A stretch of 64,000 nt of DNA from Octopus sinensis (GCF_006345805.1 NC_043003.1:29946001-30010000); one strand, 5' to 3'. Shown: positions 1 through 59,560, counted from the stretch's first letter. A program made the numbers and translations. The notes: generated by a model from the letters alone, not told the origin.

Positions 1-1394
1 GTTGTGACGTATTTACCTTCCTTCTGTATTTCACGGAACTTTGCGAAGCCTTCATAATTCTTGTGGAGCAGATATTGGTCGAGAGTAAGAGCAAATTTCT
101 CTTCTGGCCACTTGGCTCTCCATATGCATAGGACCCGGAAAGTACGTAGCCAACGGCAGTTGGCAAATTTCCTTTCTAACTCTATATTGTGATCTCTAAG
201 ACTGTGTAACATATCTCCTTTCCACATGCGATTTGAATCAACGACCCGAATCAGATTAATTAAATATTGATCAGTAAACAGTCTCTCATCATATTGAACG
301 TTACATTTGGTGTGTGCTGTGAGATTTCGTTTCACCGGTAGAAAACAATTTATAAGTCTGTGTGAGAACAATTGTCTCAGCTTTTCCTCCCAGCTTCTTA
401 TCTCCTGGTCCTCTTTAGAATCCATGAGATAGCCCTTTACGGTAGAATATATTTTGATTAATTTAAACAAAGGGTATTCGACGAATTTTGGTGTTTCGGT
501 TGGATATTCAGGAAAACGTTTCTTTTTAGTAGAGCTCTGTTTCTCATCAGAAGTAGAACTCTGTTCATTATCTGGGGAAAGAGTTTCTTGATTTGTCGAT
601 GTTACTTCATTTTTCTTTGGTGAATTTTCATTTATGATCTTATAAGTGTAGTGTTTAGTTGCATGTTCTTCGAATGCTTTCAGTTTTTCCTCATAATCCC
701 TTTTTTTCTTTACTCTTGTAAAGTAGTCATCGATATCATCCAAACAGAGAATGTGTTTATAGCGTTCCAATTTAGTTTTCTGCTTTATAATCTCTTCGAA
801 CAATGCCAAACAATCGCCTTTCCTTTTATTGAACTCCTCTAATAACCATCTCATGAAGTGATCTTCATATTTATCACGAAAAGTACAATCCATAGTGTAT
901 TCGTAAGTTTCTTTCTTTATACGTGCCTTCAAAGTTTTTTGGGCTCCGCGTGGACAGCCAAATATATTGAAAGGCCATGACGACAGCTTTAAAACTTCTC
1001 GTACTCTTCGGTAAAATCTAAAATCAGTTTCATTTGGATTCAAAGCGAGATAATTACAGATAAATTCGTAAATTGCATCATGAAACATCGAATCTGCCTT
1101 TCTATCGTAATCGATATGAAATATCCCAGTAAAACTATTCACTGCCAGTTCAGAAAATCCAAGCGTATATCCTAATCTAAAAGCAACATCACGATCGTTA
1201 ATGCTGTCTGCCCACTTCCGTATATTTTCGTGCGTGAAGAAACCTTTGTATTCTGTGCAATTCATGGCAATAACAACATCTTCCTGTTCCACAGGACTTT
1301 CCCAAAACTTTATTCGGTATTTTTCCGCATCCTCAAGAGTTGGCCCTTTTGCATTCTCATCGTTTGGCCCAGACCACGTCTCTTGTACTTCCAT
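1..1394 (-). CDS. Large single-exon ORF of at least 464 aa, 3'-truncated by the window edge; unknown protein with two putative death-fold-like helical domains
   Basis: Manual translation from ATG at 1394 (MEVQETWSGPNDENAKGPTLEDAEKYRIKFWES...HKNYEGFAKFREIQKEGKYVT) has no stop down to position 1. An upstream in-frame stop lies at 1428-1430, with an acceptor-like TCTCCCTTTAG just upstream. Such a long open frame in AT-rich DNA is very unlikely by chance. The domain call is inference. Confidence 0.85.
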   Translation of the reverse strand, partial: MEVQETWSGPNDENAKGPTLEDAEKYRIKFWESPVEQEDVVIAMNCTEYKGFFTHENIRKWADSINDRDVAFRLGYTLGFSELAVNSFTGIFHIDYDRKADSMFHDAIYEFICNYLALNPNETDFRFYRRVREVLKLSSWPFNIFGCPRGAQKTLKARIKKETYEYTMDCTFRDKYEDHFMRWLLEEFNKRKGDCLALFEEIIKQKTKLERYKHILCLDDIDDYFTRVKKKRDYEEKLKAFEEHATKHYTYKIINENSPKKNEVTSTNQETLSPDNEQSSTSDEKQSSTKKKRFPEYPTETPKFVEYPLFKLIKIYSTVKGYLMDSKEDQEIRSWEEKLRQLFSHRLINCFLPVKRNLTAHTKCNVQYDERLFTDQYLINLIRVVDSNRMWKGDMLHSLRDHNIELERKFANCRWLRTFRVLCIWRAKWPEEKFALTLDQYLLHKNYEGFAKFREIQKEGKYVT

Positions 1395-1904
1395 TTTACT
1401 TAGGATTTTTTTAATAATAAAACTTTTCTAAAGGGAGATAACTCACACGCTTTGGGCGTGGAAACAAAGTTTGACCTGACTTAAAGTGTCGAATTTTCTC
1501 AGAAATGCATAGTTTTTTACGAAATTTTGTCGAGGTAAAAGTTACAATTTTGCTGATGGCATTAAAAATCTGGAGGGGAAAAGGTTTCAGATCATTTTCT
1601 TCCACATGGTCATAACTAAACTACATGGTCATAACTACAGCGCAATTCCCCACCACCAACAGCAAATTTGTTTCCTCATAACTTTCTTAAAAACGTATAT
1701 TTTCTAATGAAATTTTGCCGAGATACATTTTCAAAGATATAGATTATAATTATATTAATGGGGAGTTTCGGAATTATATCCTCCATGCAGGTATAACTAT
1801 GGCGCGATTCCCACTTCCACCACCACCACCATTTTCAAGGATACAAATTATAATCACCTGAAATGGCGGACCTGGCGCACAGTTACCCCGCATATTTTCT
1901 TATA

Positions 1905-6171: not shown

Positions 6172-7067
6172 TACTCCTGACACCCATCCCACTTAAAAAG
6201 AAACATCCCATATAGTATGGCAAGACGCATATGTAGCATAGTAACTGACTCACAAACACGCCTAATAAGACTAGATGAGCTTAAAAACTCCCTACTAGAA
6301 CAAAAATACCCCCTTAAACTAATAAAAAATGGAATCTCAAGAGCAATGAAACTGGACATCATACAACTCAGGACCCCCAAAACAAAAAACAAAGAAAACA
6401 TTATCCCTTTCATAAACACACACAACCCTGGAGTTACCAACATGTTTCGAATCATACATTCAAACCTACCAATAGTCTTACAAAGCCCCAAAATGGAAAA
6501 CATACTAAACAAATATTGCATAAAAAACAGTAGACGATAAGACAAAAACCTGAAGAAACAACTAACAAGAGCGAAATTCTCATCAGAAACTAAAACTGAA
6601 TTCTTTGTAAAAGAGTGCGGAGATGGAGATGTGGGATCTGCAGTAACCCCACCTATAAATGCATAGAGGGAGACAAAGAAATGAAATTTAAAAGTGGTCA
6701 CATGTTCAAAATAAATGCAGATATGAACTGCAAAATGCAGAACGTAATATACTGCATAACCTGCCCCACATGCAAGGAGGATTACAGAGGTGAAACTGGA
6801 AATTCTTTATGCCAACGAGCTAGAATTCACCAACATGTCCGACAGGAGGAACTCCGCAAGGTACCACTGAGTAAACACCTAGATACAAGTGGAGAAGGAA
6901 AATTTAAGATCTTTCCCTTCTACAAATGTCCAAGGAATGATACTTCCTTCAGGAGGAATATGGAAAAATACTTCATAACTAAGTTCTCCCCCAAACTGAA
7001 TGGCTGAAAATATCTCTATAATAAGCTGTACTAGATGAAGAACCAAATATGTAAAGTAAATTGTATT

Positions 7068-7068
<1 letters not shown>
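6172..7068 (+). mobile_element. 5'-truncated Penelope-like element: C-terminal region and GIY-YIG endonuclease, disabled
   Basis: HPSHLKRNIPYSMARRICSI motif, then Cys-rich linker RCGIC, then NVIYCITCPTCKEDYRGETG...RARIH...EKYFITKFSPKLN. A stop at 6538-6540 and a frameshift near 6620. Flanked by (TA)n and (CA)n. Confidence 0.92.
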
Positions 7069-7103
<35 letters not shown>

Positions 7104-7291
7104 CTACACATATGTACACATACATAAATAAAAACAATCTCTAATCCAGATTCTCCATCCCATGTAAGCACAGAAATCAAACATTGGATTCAAAGAACTG
7201 AATAGTGGTATAAATATCAACACAATTATTTCTTCTTCCTCTTTTTCTTCTTTTTTCCCTTCTCCAACGACACCCCTTCCATATTGACAGG

Positions 7292-7326
<35 letters not shown>

Positions 7327-10922: not shown

Positions 10923-11454
10923 AATGAACGCAATGAATATCTGATTCATAATATTTGTTCTCATGATTGTGTGTTGGTCGTGGCGTGTGGCGATGATAAT
11001 TCTTCCTATGAATGCAGACAGATACATCAAAGAACACCGTCTGACGAACCTTACATTAAATAACGGGAGTGGACTTGTCAAAGTTATACATGAAGGGGAG
11101 TTAGGGGGAAATGGAGGAAATAGCGTGAGTGAGGAAGATGGCCCCTAGCAACCACACCTTTTAAGATAGGGATTTATAAGGTAGCCCACGGGCATCGTCA
11201 CCTCATTCTACATGTCCCTGTAAATTTTGGAGCGAATCGGACGGGACGTAGTGGCATTGAAAGCGATCCAAGCTGTAAAAACGCATTTCAGTTTTATATA
11301 TAGAGATTTTATATATAGAGATGATATATGTTATTTGATGTATAAAAAACATGTAATATACAAATAAATATCTGCAAATATAAAACCATCCGAATTTCTG
11401 AGTACCTCATTTCTTCTAATATAAAATACTTGTACATCATCTCCAAACCTTCTA

Positions 11455-11499
<45 letters not shown>

Positions 11500-19098: not shown

Positions 19099-19119
19099 AA
19101 CATCACCATCTCGGTATGG

Positions 19120-19158
<39 letters not shown>
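19099..19158. repeat. (TA)n microsatellite
   Basis: About 30 uninterrupted TA units. Similar tracts occur near 11460, 29770 and 54850. Confidence 0.98.
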
Positions 19159-19182
<24 letters not shown>

Positions 19183-22600: not shown

Positions 22601-23737
22601 ATGGAAGGTAAGGGTGAAACACAGTCTGAAACTAGTGATTTAACTCCTCACACTGAAGTAAATAAAAAGAAGAAATCATATCCTTGTGACATTTGCGGAA
22701 AGACATTCTCACAAAGTAGTAATGTAATTCAGCATAAATTAATTCACTCTGGTTCAAAACCTTATGCTTGTGGTGTTTGTGGTAAGAGGTTCACTGCAAA
22801 TAGTTCTCTTTCTTGTCATAAACGGATCCACACAGGGGAAAGACCCTACAACTGTAATGTCTGTGGTAAAGCATTTACAATCAAAAGCAATTTGACAAGC
22901 CATGAACGCATACATTCTGGAGAGAAGCCATTTCATTGTGAAGTATGTGGCAAAACATTAGCTCGCAGTACAGAGTTAGCTCATCATATACGGACACACA
23001 CAGGGGAAAAACCATATCAGTGTGATGTTTGTGACAAGGCATTCTCTAAAAAGGATTCTTTGGTACGCCACCAACGTATTCATACCGGAGAGAAACCATA
23101 CAGCTGTGATATTTGTGGAAGAACATTCTCTCTAAAGGGTTCTTTATCCACTCACCAGCGAACTCATGAAGATAAGTTATCGTATCAGTGTAATATATGT
23201 GGTAAAATATTATATCGAAAACATGATTTAGTGAGGCATAATTGTGCTCGCACTCTACAGAGACGATTTATATGCAATGTTTGTGGTGAAGAGTTTCTTC
23301 AGAAATGTCATTTATTTAACCACAAACAAACTCATGCAGGAGAAAAACCATACCACTGTGACATTTGTGATAAACCATTCTCACAGAAAAATCAACTGCT
23401 TGTCCACAAACGTACACACACAGGAGAAAAACCTTATAACTGTGATATCTGTGGTTATATGTTCTCTCAGAAAGGTCATTTGTCTCGTCACAGACGAATT
23501 CACACTGGTGATAAACTATACCTCTGTGATATCTGTGGTAAAAGTTTCTCTCGATGTAATAATTTGTCATCTCATGTGCGCACACATACGGGTGAGAAAC
23601 CATTTGAATGTGATGTCTGCGGTGAAGCTTTCACCGTAAATAGTCAATTATCTACTCACAAAGGTATTCACAGAAGAAACAATACATATTTCACAGTGAA
23701 TATTGTCACTAAGACATTTAAACCTCCTGACAATTAA
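22601..23737 (+). CDS. Intact C2H2 zinc-finger protein, 378 aa, 12 tandem fingers (finger 7 atypical), single coding exon
   Basis: Repeated CxxC-x12-HxxxH with TGEKP(Y/F) linkers and no stops. Acceptor tttcttttctattag at 22561-22575. Confidence 0.96.
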   Translation: MEGKGETQSETSDLTPHTEVNKKKKSYPCDICGKTFSQSSNVIQHKLIHSGSKPYACGVCGKRFTANSSLSCHKRIHTGERPYNCNVCGKAFTIKSNLTSHERIHSGEKPFHCEVCGKTLARSTELAHHIRTHTGEKPYQCDVCDKAFSKKDSLVRHQRIHTGEKPYSCDICGRTFSLKGSLSTHQRTHEDKLSYQCNICGKILYRKHDLVRHNCARTLQRRFICNVCGEEFLQKCHLFNHKQTHAGEKPYHCDICDKPFSQKNQLLVHKRTHTGEKPYNCDICGYMFSQKGHLSRHRRIHTGDKLYLCDICGKSFSRCNNLSSHVRTHTGEKPFECDVCGEAFTVNSQLSTHKGIHRRNNTYFTVNIVTKTFKPPDN

Positions 23738-26300: not shown

Positions 26301-28454
26301 TCTTTATATTCCATGAAGGTATTTTGGTGAGCCTATGAACTTTTCAGTCAACTCTTGCACAATAATTTTAGTGAACATTTTCATAAGTGGGATGCCTGTG
26401 AGATTCTCTTGGTATAGTAAATTGACTTTGACCAACAAAATCTTTTATATCTGGCAGATCCCCAACTCTACTGAGAATAAAGCAACTGACCATGTATGAA
26501 CACATTTGTTGTATTGTAAAGAAAGGAACTTATTTCAATTAAACAGAGAAAAACAGATATTTAGTCATAAGGTTTTCTTAATAGAAATTTAAAGAACAGA
26601 GGTTTATCCTTTTCTTTGTTTCCAAATAAACTTCTTTCAAAAGAATACATGCATGCACACAGAGATGAGGAGCACATTTGGTGAGAGAGAGATGAAAACA
26701 GAATATTGTTGCTTGCTTGACTTTGAGAAATTACATGTTAAGGATTCATTACATCATGTTCAATTATAAAATGAATTTGAAAATAGCTGCAAGAAAATAA
26801 TCATTCAATTTTGTAATGATTGAATGGAGGAAATGGATAGTGCCTGTTAGTCATCAAAGTTATTTGTGTATTGAATGAGATCAAGGTAAACACAATGGTA
26901 GATAGATATAGAGCATTTCTTATTGCAAAGTAACTTATTAAAATTTAACAGAGAAAAATAAATATTTGTAAGTTTTCTAAACAGAAATTTGAAGACAGGA
27001 GATTCATAATTTTCATTCTATTTTATAATAAACTTGCTTCTTCGATGAAATTTTCTATTGAAAATATCTCTGACAATTGAGAAATGTGAATGTGTGGTTG
27101 GCCTTTTTTTGTTGTTGGTCAGCAGTATTGCAAAGACAATAAGTTGACCATCTCTGCTGTGACTTGGCTGTTTCCAGAAACAAATGTCTAACCCCAAGTA
27201 CACTTACCACCTCTACACTCATGGATACACCATGAGCCAGTATCTTCCCAGCATCCATAGAACCACAGGGATGCTAGATATTGGTTAAGCATAACCTTAC
27301 ATATCTGCCTTATGATCGCTTCCTTCAGATTCTCTCCCTTAGCAGGGGCCTGTTATTATGACGGGCATAATTTCTGCTGAACCAGTCTCATTCTCCAAAC
27401 TTATATTAGCCAAGGGCAATGAGTGCCATGAACCCAGTAAGCAGTATGCAAGATTTGAATGGAGTTACCTCCTCTTAGATGAGTGAAAGAGTCTAATCTC
27501 CCCTAGGTTAGTTAGGTGTCTGTGAGTGACCTAGAGGTAATTTTAGGACATGCTGATTAACCTTTGACTGCGACCCTGTGTGTGTGTGCATGTATATATA
27601 TATATATACATAGTTATATTTTTCTAATGAAATATATAGATTACTTAGAAGTGCTCAAGTCAAACCTGAGACATTAGATATAAAAAAGAAAAAGTTCAGA
27701 TTAGGCAAACCTCTTTCAACATGTAGATTTGATCAAGATAAAATTCATCAAAATTAAAACATATATTAATATATCAAACATAGAAAAATTTAGGAATATT
27801 AAAAATATAAATATGAGTGTAGAAGCACAGTGATAATATAGTAAAAGATAAGAATATAGAAGATAGTGAAAAGTTAATAATTGGCATCTAATAAGGTTTC
27901 GGGTTACAATTTTAGGCGATAATATTCTGACAGCCATTTCTGGAGTTCATTCTTCTGGATAAAAAAAATGAATCTTGAAATCCATTTTGGAGAATGTCTC
28001 CATCAGGAAAAACAGTGATATTCATGGTAGATATGCACTCAGTGCATTGCCATGGGAGGAGGCAATCATGAGCTTATATAGAACAGGTTTATGTATGCAA
28101 ATAATGGAAATCTTTATGAGGGCTGATGGGAGTAAAAATTACATTACGTATGGAATTTATTGAAATTTATATTTGGTAATATATTGTTATAGGCAATAAG
28201 ATATTAAGTTGTGCAACTGAAATTACTGAGGCTAATTATTTAGTACATTCGGACTTATCTCATGAAAGTAGAGTAATATTTGTGATTACATGAATATATA
28301 GCATCAGAAAACTTATTTAATATAGTAGTATCATACAGATGAAGTATAGTGTAGGATTCTTTTATGTACATTCTACATCTACCCATAATCGTATTGAAGG
28401 TAGGGGCCTCATCTATAATAGACTGCATTTAAATTGATGTAATTTAAATTGATG

Positions 28455-29690
28455 CGTGTGTACGAACAGCCATGCTACATGGCAGCGAAACATGGGCTGT
28501 GACTGCTGAGGACATGCGTAAGCTCGTGAGGAATGAAGCCAGTATGCTCCGATGGATGTGTAATGTCAGTGTACATACTCGACAGAGCGTTAGCACCTTG
28601 AGAGAAATGTTGTACCTAAGAAGCATCAGTTGTGGTGTGCAAGAGAGACGATTGCGCTGGTATGGTCATGTGGCGAGAATGGATGAAGATAGGTGTGTGA
28701 GAAAGTGCCAATCCCTAGCAGTTGAGGGAACCCGTGGAAGAGGTAGACCCAGGAAAACCTGGGACGAGGTGGTGAAGCACGACCTTCGAACTTTAGGCCT
28801 CACTGAGGAAATGACCAGAGACCGAGACCTTTGGAAATATTCTGTACGTGAGAAGACCAGGCAGGACAAGTGAGCCCAGCCCACTTATGAATGCCTTTCC
28901 TCCCTTGGACACAAAGACCGGTTGAGGCAAGCGAAGTCGATATAGAACCTCATCCGACGACAGACACCCATCCCAACCCCCCATGCTTGCGAAGACATGT
29001 TGGGGCAAGCGAAATCGAAACCGAATTGAACCAGCCAGGATCCCTGGCCTGGTGGTACGTAAAAAGCACTATCCGACTCGGGGCCGTGGCACGTAAAATA
29101 CTCCAATGCGACCGTACGACAGGCACCCATGCCAACCCCCTTTGCTTGTGAAGACATGTTGGGGCAAGCGAAATCGAAATCGAATTGAACCAGCCAGGAT
29201 CCCTGGTCTGGTGGTACGTAAAGCACTATCCGACTCGTAGCCGTGGCACGTAAAATACTCCAATGCGACCGTACGACAGGCACCCTTGCCAACCCCCTTT
29301 GCTTGTGAAGACATGTTGGGGCAAGCGAAATCGAAATCGAATTGAACCAGCCAGGATCCCTGGTCTGGTGGTACGTAAAAAGCACTATCCGACTCGTGGC
29401 CGATGCCAGCACCGCCTCGACTGGCTTCCGTGCCGGTGGCACATAAAATACACCAATCTGACCGTGGCCGTTGCCAGCCCCGCCTGGCACCTGTGCAGGT
29501 GGCACGTAAAAAGCACCCACTACACTCACGGAGTGGTTGGCGTTAGGAAGGGCATCCAGCTGTAGAAACATTGCCAAATTAGACTGGAGCCTGGTGCAGC
29601 CTTCTGGCTTCCCAGAACCCCGGTCGAACCGTCCAACCCATGCTAGCATGGAGAACGGACGTTAAACGACGATGATGATGATGATGATGT
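28455..29690 (+). mobile_element. 5'-truncated RTE-clade LINE: RT C-terminus, long 3' UTR and (GAT)n tail
   Basis: LHGSETW...LRWYGHVARM...GTRGRGRPRKTWDEVV...DRDLW, stop at 28871-28873, ~158-bp tandem units at 28985-29405, tail at 29671-29689. Confidence 0.95.
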
Positions 29691-29769
29691 AATGATTGAA
29701 TTGTTCAACTAAATGGAGCCACTTGAAATGGTCTTACTGCATCACCTCTGGATATCCTGTTGCTTATTT

Positions 29770-29803
<34 letters not shown>

Positions 29804-30290
29804 GTATGTATACATGTATACGTTTGTGTATGTGGAAAGAGAGAGAGAGAGAAATGTATGTATACTTTTTATTTATAGGAAAATGAATATGTGAGCCAGC
29901 ATGATCTTCCCCACCTCCCCTTCCAAACCAAAATACATTTAATAAAACACTTCTATCAACAAATATTTTTATCAAAAGTCCTGTATCTTACACCTCATTA
30001 ACATTTCAATATATATATATATTAAATGTTAATGAGGTGTAAGATACATGTCTTTTGATTAAAATGTTTGTTCATATGTATTTTGGCTTGAGAGAGGAGG
30101 TGAGGAAGATCATGCTAGCTCACATATTCATTTCTCTATGAACAAAAAGTATATATACATTTCTCTCTCTCTACATACATACACACAAATACATGTATAC
30201 ATATACATACATACATACCTTTACATGTATATGCATACATACACACACACATACAAATGTACTCATACATATAAATACATACGCACCTAT

Positions 30291-34458: not shown

Positions 34459-35172
34459 AGAGATATCAAAGTGATATGGTTTCTCACTTGTGTGAGTAGC
34501 TAAATGACCATACTGAGTGAATGTTTACCACAATGATATGGTCTTTCACCAGTGTGTGTATATCTATGATTAGTTAAAATACAATTCTGAGAGAAGGACT
34601 TGCCACAGATATCACAGTGGTATGGTTTTTCAGCTGTATGCATTTGCATGTGAATGGCTATATCACCTTTCCAACAAAATGCTTCACTACATACTTCACA
34701 ATGATAAGGTTTTTCACCTATGTGTAATCATATGTGACAATTTCAAGAAAAACTTTTGCCACAAATATTACAATGATATTGTCTCTTTTATGCAAACCTT
34801 TGTGACCACTCCAAGAGATGTTTTTACCACAGATATCACAGTGATATAGTTTCTCACCTGTATGAATATATCTGCGATGAGTTAAATGACTGCTGTGAGA
34901 AAATGCTTTACCACAAATTTTACAAGAATATGGTCTTTCTCCAGTGTGAACACACTCGTGACTTGTTAATCCACCAATCCGAGAGAATGATTTACCACAA
35001 ATATCACAGTAATATGGTTTCTCTTGTGTATGGATTCGTTTGTGACAATTTAAACTGCTCAACTGAGAGAATAATTTCCCACAAATATCACAATAGTATG
35101 GTTTCTCATCTGTGTGAACCTGCATGTGGCTAATTAAACGAACCTTTAGAGTATATGATTTACCAGAGACAT

Positions 35173-35670
35173 CCTTGTGGCCTATGCCAGGGGTGTAACC
35201 AGCCCACTTATGCATACCTTCCCTTCATTGGATACTGCTTGCGAAGACCTGTTGAGGCAAGTGAAATCGAAATCAAATTAGATGACTGGCATTCGTGCTA
35301 GTAGAGCACTAAGAGCACCATCTGAGTGTGATCGTTGCCAGAGTGGCTAACTGGCATCCATGCCGGTGGCATGTAAAAAGCACCATTCGAGCGTGATCGT
35401 TACCAGTGTCAACTTACTGGCACTTGTGCCCGTGTGCAGATGGCATGTAAAAAAAAGACCATTTGTGCATGGCCGTTGCCAGTACCACCTGACTGGCCCT
35501 CGTGCAGGTGTAGTAAAAGCACCCTCTACACTTTCGGAGTGGTTGGCATTAGGAAGGGCATCCAGCTGTAGAAACTCTGCCAGATCAAGACTGGAGCCTG
35601 GTTCGCCAGTCCTCAGTCAAATCGTCCAACCCATGCTAGCAATGGAAAGCAGACATTAAAGGATGATGAT
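35173..35670 (+). mobile_element. RTE 3' UTR of about 500 bp inserted in the zinc-finger pseudogene
   Basis: ccagcccacttatgcatacc...ggcattaggaagggcatccagctgtagaaac...ggatgatgat. Splits the YFCD/VSGKS codons. Confidence 0.88.
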
Positions 35671-54830: not shown

Positions 54831-54842
54831 ATCTAGTGATGA

Positions 54843-54887
<45 letters not shown>

Positions 54888-55829
54888 CTGGCAAATTGAG
54901 TAGATACGGCATAGGGTTGACATGACTATATAACCTTGCCAAAGGCAGCCTCTACAATGCTGGTGGCAATATATGCACTAGTACTATAAAGTGGTTGGTG
55001 TTAGGGCACCCAAATGTAGGAACCAAGACAAAAACTAACATGTGTAGGGTGTAGTTTTTCTGACCTGTTGTGAGTTGGGAAAGGAATAATTCAGAGTATG
55101 TGACTCAGACTGTTCCCCTTGCCCAGTCAATTCACACAAGCATGAAAAGCTAACATAAAAATGATGATATATCTACACACACTATACACATAAAATACAT
55201 CTTTGGTTTAAATGACTATATTTCCAATGTGTTGTCAAGTGTAAATCTGCCTCAAATGGTATCAATGTGTTATAATTCCATTTACTGGATCATAAAAGTG
55301 TATTTTGTAATAGTAAATATTTGTTCACTAGTGCAGCTATTTGACTGAATGTGTGTTGTGTGTGTGTATGTACTTGTTTTCAGTGGTGTGATGTGATGTT
55401 CTTACCTTTGTGTAAAGTTGAGTCCACAGAAGAGTCAGGGCCAATGTTTCTGATATGCAGTTAAGTTCATCTGTGATTTCTTGGGTTATATTCCTTTGTG
55501 TTGATAACTGACATGGACTCCATATCCTTGGCAAAGATGGCTTTTCATGGTAATAGCCAGTATTTTTTGGTAGACTACATCTAATGTGAATCTGTTTTTG
55601 CTAGTTGCAACACAGACTGGGGGAAAATAGAGTATCTAGTATGATAGTCTATACTGAATTTCATCATTTGGTTGATGTTTTAACTATGGTCATCCCAACC
55701 AAATTGTTGGTATTCCCAGTTGTGTAACAAGGTTACTGCTCAGAAGATAGTTGGGAGACATAAGATTTAAATCCAGTTGTTACATAAACAAGTCAAACTT
55801 AGAAATACTTTTGTTAGCTCATGAGGCTC

Positions 55830-59071: not shown

Positions 59072-59169
59072 AACTGAGTTATACCTCGTTCCAAGCAGAA
59101 TTGGAAAAGTGGCAATTTAATCAGATGACTCAGAGAAGCATGATAGTTTTGTACAATTCTTTTGTCAAC

Positions 59170-59560
59170 CCAATTGCCATCTATGCCAGTGACACGTAGA
59201 AGATGACAGCAGGACTCGTCCACAAGCTAGATGTATTCCACCAGAGGTACCTCCGAAAAGTTCTCACCTCTTGGGAAAACAGAATAACCAATGAAGTCTA
59301 TGGGAGAACCAAACAGAAACCACTAAGAATCACAGTGAAAGATCGCCGCCTGAGGTTTCTTGGACATATCTTTAGAATGTCGTCAACAAGACACTCAAAG
59401 CACTCCTTCGATTGGAAACCAGAAAATGGAAAAAGGAAACGTGGAAGCCTGTTAATAACACAGAAGAGGACAGTTCCGAAAGATCTACATGCAGAGATGA
59501 GCTGGGAGGATGCCAAAGCTCTTGCAGAAGATAGAAATACATGGAACACCTTACATAAGC
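59170..59560 (+). mobile_element. Degenerate RTE-group LINE RT C-terminus of a third family
   Basis: PIAIYASDT*...KLDVFHQRYLRK...RRLRFLGHIFRM...WKPENGKRKRG...AEDRNTW. Confidence 0.85.

Follow-up and report, generated by a model that had tools for sequence, protein, structure and literature searches.

A probable, apparently unannotated intron-less gene of Octopus sinensis, with relatives in Octopoda and two conserved helical domains

A stretch of 64,000 nucleotides from Octopus sinensis (GCF_006345805.1 NC_043003.1:29946001-30010000), called the window in its full length throughout, opens on a long reading frame of the minus strand. The question raised by this locus is whether the frame is a gene and, if so, whether its product carries two similar death domains in tandem, as a preliminary description of the same DNA had proposed.

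The reading frame and its relatives

Translation of the minus strand gave a stop-free frame of 464 codons from an ATG at 1392-1394 down to position 3, in agreement with the preliminary description, which had placed at least 464 codons between ATG 1394 and the window edge. Bases 1-2 of the window form the beginning of codon 465, and the 3' end of the gene lies past the left edge. The frame was absent from the ORF list, as had been pointed out, because it runs off the left edge and that list needs both ends of an ORF. An in-frame TAG was present 12 codons upstream of the ATG (1428-1430), and the context of the start codon was good in all three homologues. The start and the coding sequence were as follows:

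1392..1394, minus strand: start codon, A at -3 and G at +4; L001, the sequence that bears the relative P0001, starts at the corresponding position, and the Argonauta start shares this context
3..1394, minus strand: coding sequence, codons 1-464 of an estimated ~480, without a stop; it matches the relatives P0001 and P0002

From the base composition of the window (36% G+C, a stop probability of 6.9% per codon), the chance of 464 open codons was estimated as 3.7e-15 per start and as ~5e-10 for the window on both strands. The second-longest ORF in the window was a C2H2 zinc-finger gene of 378 aa. The 464-codon protein had no self-match in the protein collection (5.8 billion cluster representatives), from which we infer that no called gene is recorded for it in this assembly. 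A lack of transcript support could be the cause of the missing record.

Among ~15 billion public proteins, only two relatives of the octopus protein were found. A word-indexed search of the 5.8 billion cluster representatives returned one of them (P0001). Run exhaustively against 1.84 billion representatives, a HMMER profile returned P0001 and P0002 only, the latter with an E-value of 7e-80.

The protein P0001 has 466 aa and showed 67% identity over 97% of the length of the window protein. Its contigs, 2.0-2.3 kb long, come from the Logan assemblies of SRR11869391 and SRR11869394, and P0001 could represent either the orthologue of another octopodid or a paralogue. The two loci were 82% identical at the nucleotide level and collinear, including 460 bp of 5' flank, with the same start codon, and residues 50-140 were nearly identical in the two proteins. 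The differences comprised four in-frame indels, three of them internal and one near the cut C-terminus, and the complete C-terminus of P0001, which is cut off in the window. P0001 ends 14 aligned residues past the cut point of the window, and the full octopus product is therefore expected to have about 480 aa.

The second relative, P0002, is the hypothetical protein Ahia01_000603900 of Argonauta hians (482 aa; GCA_054771915.1, BAAFZT010000030.1), with 33-35% identity to the window protein over 92% of the query. Its gene, a single exon of 1449 nt, lies on a contig of 10.5 Mb and has a dynein heavy chain as its upstream neighbour. The length class, the single exon and the order of N-domain, helical middle, linker and C-domain are shared with the octopus gene. 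P0002 differs in its linker, which is longer and Glu/Lys-rich, and its flanking DNA could not be aligned and holds the dynein heavy chain upstream; P0002 is also without an assigned function. No dynein heavy chain exons or other shared Argonauta neighbours were found in the window, which covers 62 kb upstream of the gene, and therefore synteny with the Argonauta locus is not visible.

The coding region was a single exon in three of the three loci, in line with the one large exon described earlier. Intact ORFs of 464+, 466 and 482 codons in the three sources, and a profile search that returned no others, place the gene among the taxonomically restricted (orphan) genes of Octopoda. Cephalopod genomes contain many lineage-specific orphan genes, few of which have been characterised. 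The earlier views that the gene is lineage-specific and that it cannot be assigned to a known gene were both upheld, the only relatives being the unnamed ORF of P0001 and the hypothetical protein of Argonauta hians. Judged by its sequence, the gene appears to be a new member, seemingly without annotation, of a very small group of hypothetical proteins. So far it seems to be restricted to Octopoda; this restriction rests on protein collections, from which unannotated copies in other cephalopod genomes would be absent. The locus would thereby add a real gene apparently absent from the Octopus sinensis gene set and define a small octopod-restricted family with two conserved helical domains.

Anatomy of the predicted protein and the death-domain proposal

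The three-way alignment and the AF2 models divided the predicted protein into four parts, an arrangement common to all three homologues; two of the parts contain the segments that the preliminary description had considered death-like:

960..1322, minus strand: N-terminal conserved helical domain, aa 25-145, the best conserved block
984-1238, minus strand: first "death-like" segment of the preliminary description, aa 53-137, inside the N-terminal domain
627..959, minus strand: charged helical middle, aa 146-256, 43% D/E/K/R, with long helices at 173-204 and 218-256
510..626, minus strand: Ser/Thr/Asn/Gln-rich linker, aa 257-295, 51% S/T/N/Q, ending in KKKR-FPEYP
3..509, minus strand: conserved helical region at the C-terminus, aa 296-464, truncated at the window edge
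30-278, minus strand: second "death-like" segment of the preliminary description, aa 373-455, inside the C-terminal region

The segments quoted earlier (FT at aa 53-54 and 373-374, RLGYTLGFS and CIWRAKWPEE) were all located in the translation at the residues given for them. The N-terminal domain contained the motifs YKGFFT, RDxxFRxGYTLGFS, YDRKxDS and TDFRFYR, and its residues 45-145 were 90% identical to P0001 and 47% identical to P0002. Helices were predicted here at low confidence by AF2 at 55-64, 68-77, 82-91, 100-118, 125-136 and 149-161. The charged middle was the only part of the full-length AF2 model at a pLDDT of 70-80. The linker had a pLDDT of 27-30 with no secondary structure and is probably disordered; its length and sequence differ among the three homologues, and KKKR is not conserved. 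The separation of the domains by a charged helical region and a linker ending in KKKR, described earlier, was thus recovered, with the linker being rich in S/T/N/Q.

In the three-way alignment, the conserved C-terminal block covered ~aa 305-460, with the motifs KxYSTxxGYL, DSxRxxxGDxLxxLRDxNxEL and CxWLRTF...W...W..KF...LL. The C-terminal region had 44 invariant positions across the three proteins, and aa 365-464 were 37% identical to the Argonauta protein. Low-confidence AF2 helices were placed at 308-323, 330-342, 345-351, 375-387, 394-409, 414-428, 431-444 and 448-459, and only helices were predicted in the two AF2 runs. The maximum 19-residue hydropathy was 0.85-1.22, and therefore no membrane segment and no signal peptide were assigned. 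Inspection of the three-way alignment by eye gave no conserved catalytic-looking motif. A HEPN-like Rx6H motif (R98-H105) and short motifs in the linker of the NLS or TRAF type (KKKR, PExP) were considered and dropped because none of them is conserved in Argonauta.

On balance, it is probable that the frame is a genuine intron-less gene of an Octopoda family and that it encodes a soluble all-alpha two-domain protein of ~480 aa, likely a scaffold or adaptor. Such a product would lack a signal peptide, a membrane segment and a conserved catalytic motif, and would consist of two unrelated conserved helical domains (~25-145 and ~305-460) joined by the charged helical segment and the variable linker. 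As a non-enzymatic scaffold or adaptor, it would bind a partner or itself through each conserved domain, and the variable middle would serve as a spacer between them. This role is suggested by the domain-linker-domain layout combined with the lack of catalytic signatures; it is the most likely role, and it rests on the absence of other signals. The fast evolution of the gene would be compatible with a part in reproduction, immunity or cell death. The analysis is chiefly of value for correcting the annotation, for posing a clear structural question and for withdrawing a "tandem death-domain" label that lacks support.

The two domains had been described as internally similar. BLASTP of aa 41-145 against aa 361-464 gave a best E-value of 0.77 with a single sequence as the search space, and a comparison of the two domain profiles in hhalign (alignments of three sequences each) gave a probability of 0.2% over 13 columns that were out of register. 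By these comparisons the domains are no more alike than chance, and an internal tandem duplication is not supported.

A tandem death-fold adaptor, in which both domains would be divergent six-helix bundles nucleating homotypic assemblies in cephalopod innate immunity or cell death, is possible but improbable. The hmmscan search of Pfam-A at E<=10 gave no Death, CARD, DED or PYRIN match for the three proteins and the isolated domains. At this threshold the window protein, P0001 and the isolated domains had no match whatever, and P0002 had one noise-level match. Scans of Pfam, NCBIfam, PHROGs and PADLOC with the three proteins and the isolated domains returned nothing beyond noise, which fell in the charged middle. 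When PDB was searched by sequence, using the single protein or profiles of the full length, the N domain and the C-terminal region, the best E-value was 0.18, to an uncharacterised protein.

For profile comparison, five human death domains (FADD, Fas, MyD88, p75NTR and TNFR1) were typed in, each of which matched its own PDB chains at ~190-210 bits; together with 117 PF00531 proteins they made up a death-domain profile of 122 sequences. Against this profile, hhalign gave the N domain a probability of 1.2% (P 0.044), with RLGYTLGFSELAVNSFTG placed on death-domain helices 2-3, and the C domain a probability of 0.4% (P 0.16), where 48 columns of ELERKF..RTFRVLCIWRAKW..LTLDQYLL..FAKF covered helices 3-6 and the Trp of helix 4. 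The N and C alignments were both in the register proposed by the preliminary description, though short or weak, and in this the tandem death-fold reading finds some support. Column shuffles, however, reached the N score in 3.5% and the C score in 16% of 200 trials. Known death domains left out of a 4-sequence profile scored 15-95%, and the divergent death domain of IRAK4 scored 13% against the 122-sequence profile. Moreover, the segments had been picked out visually because of the very pattern under test, and such selection would by itself lead one to expect a marginal P value. No significant profile match to the Death domain (PF00531) was obtained, and these comparisons argue against the death-domain family proper.

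True domains of the sister families scored no better: the Apaf-1 CARD reached 0.3%, the ASC PYD 3.7% and the FADD DED 0.9% against the 122-sequence profile. Since genuine CARD, DED and PYD domains score equally low, the profile test is without power at the level of the superfamily. The predicted helix counts and lengths would also suit a six-helix domain (six helices in the N domain and the 375-459 set in the C domain), which is weak evidence, and fast evolution would fit an immune role. The lack of similarity between the N and C domains counts against the tandem death-fold reading. The AF2 models had a mean pLDDT of 42.6 (full length, two sequences) and 46.5 (aa 296-464, three sequences), the low confidence being due to the finding of only two relatives for the alignment. 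Foldseek searches of PDB with these models yielded no match at E<=0.001, and the weak matches included no death-fold entry; the models are too poor for this result to be informative on the fold.

Compared with the death-fold superfamily, the octopus segments are similar in being predicted as all-helical over ~85-100 aa, with five or six helices of suitable length in the models. Two features would correspond to the death-fold pattern: in the N domain an LG-x-S-like motif between the second and third predicted helices, and in the C domain a conserved Trp that falls in predicted helix four, ahead of an A/L-T-L helix. Unlike one death domain, the conserved octopus blocks are larger (~120 and ~155 aa), and the protein is without an attached kinase, TIR, caspase or receptor domain. 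That at least one of the two domains is death-like is judged unlikely; if either is, it would represent a clade-specific branch of immune or cell-death signalling. Slightly more doubtful is the idea of an octopod-specific adaptor family whose two domains would be either death-like but highly divergent or wholly new helical folds for interaction. If true, this would be a lineage-specific addition to cephalopod innate-immune and cell-death signalling that was missed by annotations and domain libraries.

Selection and rival explanations of the frame

Alignment of L001 23-1794 with window 1854-31 gave one collinear alignment of 80% identity. The 5' flank was 82% identical to L001 and so was the coding DNA, an equal divergence such as would be expected of an ordinary locus compared between related genomes. 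The frame stayed open in none of 20,000 neutral simulations in which the 244 observed substitutions were placed at random, and the three internal indels relative to P0001 were all multiples of three. The frame being kept despite 244 substitutions and the layout and length being kept in Argonauta at 35% identity show long-term selection for the protein.

The whole-gene pairwise dN/dS against P0001 was 0.77 (bootstrap 95% interval 0.57-1.10), which is not significantly below 1. As the interval reaches 1, recent constraint appears weak outside aa ~50-160. The lowest dN was found in the N-terminal domain (0.083, omega 0.54), and conservation was concentrated in the two domains. By region, the window protein compared with P0001 as follows:

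aa 81-120: dN/dS ~0.16
aa 121-160: dN/dS ~0.34
aa 146-304, middle region: dN/dS ~0.85
aa 305-372: dN/dS ~1.36
aa 401-440: dN/dS ~0.48

On this sequence evidence the gene appears to be real and fast-evolving, the latter outside the cores of the domains. A rapidly evolving reproductive or tissue-restricted orphan (for example testis- or gamete-expressed), with no link to cell death or immunity, is an unlikely reading, and less so than those that follow. It agrees with the intron-less structure, the taxonomic restriction and a dN/dS of 0.77 with the frame kept open, a profile that is common among testis-biased orphan genes and retro-genes; young intron-less genes typically encode proteins of this kind. 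The family is, however, old enough to be present in both Octopus and Argonauta, and its two well conserved domains go beyond what most young orphan genes show.

The preliminary description had also suggested that the gene was possibly retrocopied or mobilized, and the results lend this no support. An origin as a gene of a transposable element or integrated virus, as one domesticated from such a source, or as a processed retrocopy is very unlikely. The single-exon coding region, relatives known from one animal order only and the repeat-rich surroundings (dispersed repeats begin at 1893, and a putative Penelope-like GIY-YIG remnant lies at 6615-7007) would agree with such an origin. Against it, there was one copy in the 64-kb window and a single family member per source. 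Neither Pfam nor PHROG gave a transposase, integrase, reverse transcriptase or capsid domain, and searches of 2.9 million viral contigs and of the JGI metagenome contigs returned no relatives. The match to a transposon or viral protein that had been named beforehand as a possible outcome in place of a death fold was accordingly not seen in Pfam, PHROG or the viral contigs, and within the window and these collections a transposable element or viral gene is not supported.

Of the marks of a processed retrocopy, the locus has the intron-less coding region. No multi-exon parent or other paralogue was found in the 5.8 and 1.84 billion proteins, no A-tract follows the stop codon in L001, and divergence from L001 is as great in the shared flank as in the coding DNA. 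Since all three sources lack introns in the coding region, this is an old feature of the family.

A chance or decaying functionless ORF would be consistent with the dN/dS interval including 1 and with the inferred lack of a called gene in this assembly, but the low probability of such a frame in the window, the outcome of the simulations, the in-frame internal indels and an Argonauta orthologue of the same length and layout at 35% identity make it hardly credible, and the conservation of the frame across three sources effectively refutes it.

The 5' flank and the neighbourhood of the gene

Upstream of the probable gene, the flank shared with L001 is followed by repeats and simple-sequence tracts:

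1395..1854, minus strand: 5' flank, collinear with L001 23-466 at 82% identity, with no element identified
1893-2073 vs 15451-15278, 2112-2280 vs 3460-3281, and the 2183-2472 region: repeat pairs
2480-2600, 7067-7321, 11452-11497, 19114-19182, 29755-29852 and 54842-54888: simple-sequence tracts (such as CA/TG)

The 5' flank presumably represents promoter or 5' UTR. About 30 nt before the ATG, both the window and L001 have a pyrimidine tract and then AG ("ttatctccctttag"), which by its sequence may be the acceptor site of an intron behind a non-coding first exon. The repeats, which are dispersed and locally duplicated (79-89% identity), start ~500 bp upstream of the start codon.

The window as a whole was a zinc-finger-rich and repeat-rich region. 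The 378-aa zinc-finger gene is a single exon at 22601-23737 on the plus strand with about a dozen fingers, and it is on record as a called gene of CM016865.1 (GCA_006345805.1), from 29,968,601, where every residue agrees; this places the window at about CM016865.1:29,946,001-30,010,000, in an assembly assigned in the literature to Octopus sinensis (with citation of Li et al. 2020). A further zinc-finger ORF of 165 aa was present at 34718-35215 on the minus strand.

An ORF of 130 aa at 6615-7007 (plus strand) carried a GIY-YIG nuclease domain (Pfam E 2e-4, 21.9 bits, cut-off 22.6) and is adjoined by an ORF at 6217-6540 (plus strand); the GIY-YIG ORF is probably the remnant of a Penelope-like retroelement. 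An ORF of 254 aa at 28885-29649 (minus strand) had internal repeats (FYVPP...GSWLVQFDFDFACPNMSSQA.GVGMG) and no Pfam match. It lies within a G+C-richer stretch at 28-32 kb and is probably a translated repeated DNA element, not a gene.

Comparison with the surroundings of the Argonauta homologue gave a match of window 59110-59553 (plus strand) to L003 7094-7678, an ORF near that homologue, with 35% identity over 151 aa (E 2e-19). This match is probably a transposon-derived protein common to both genomes. A weaker match was present at window 28454-28795.
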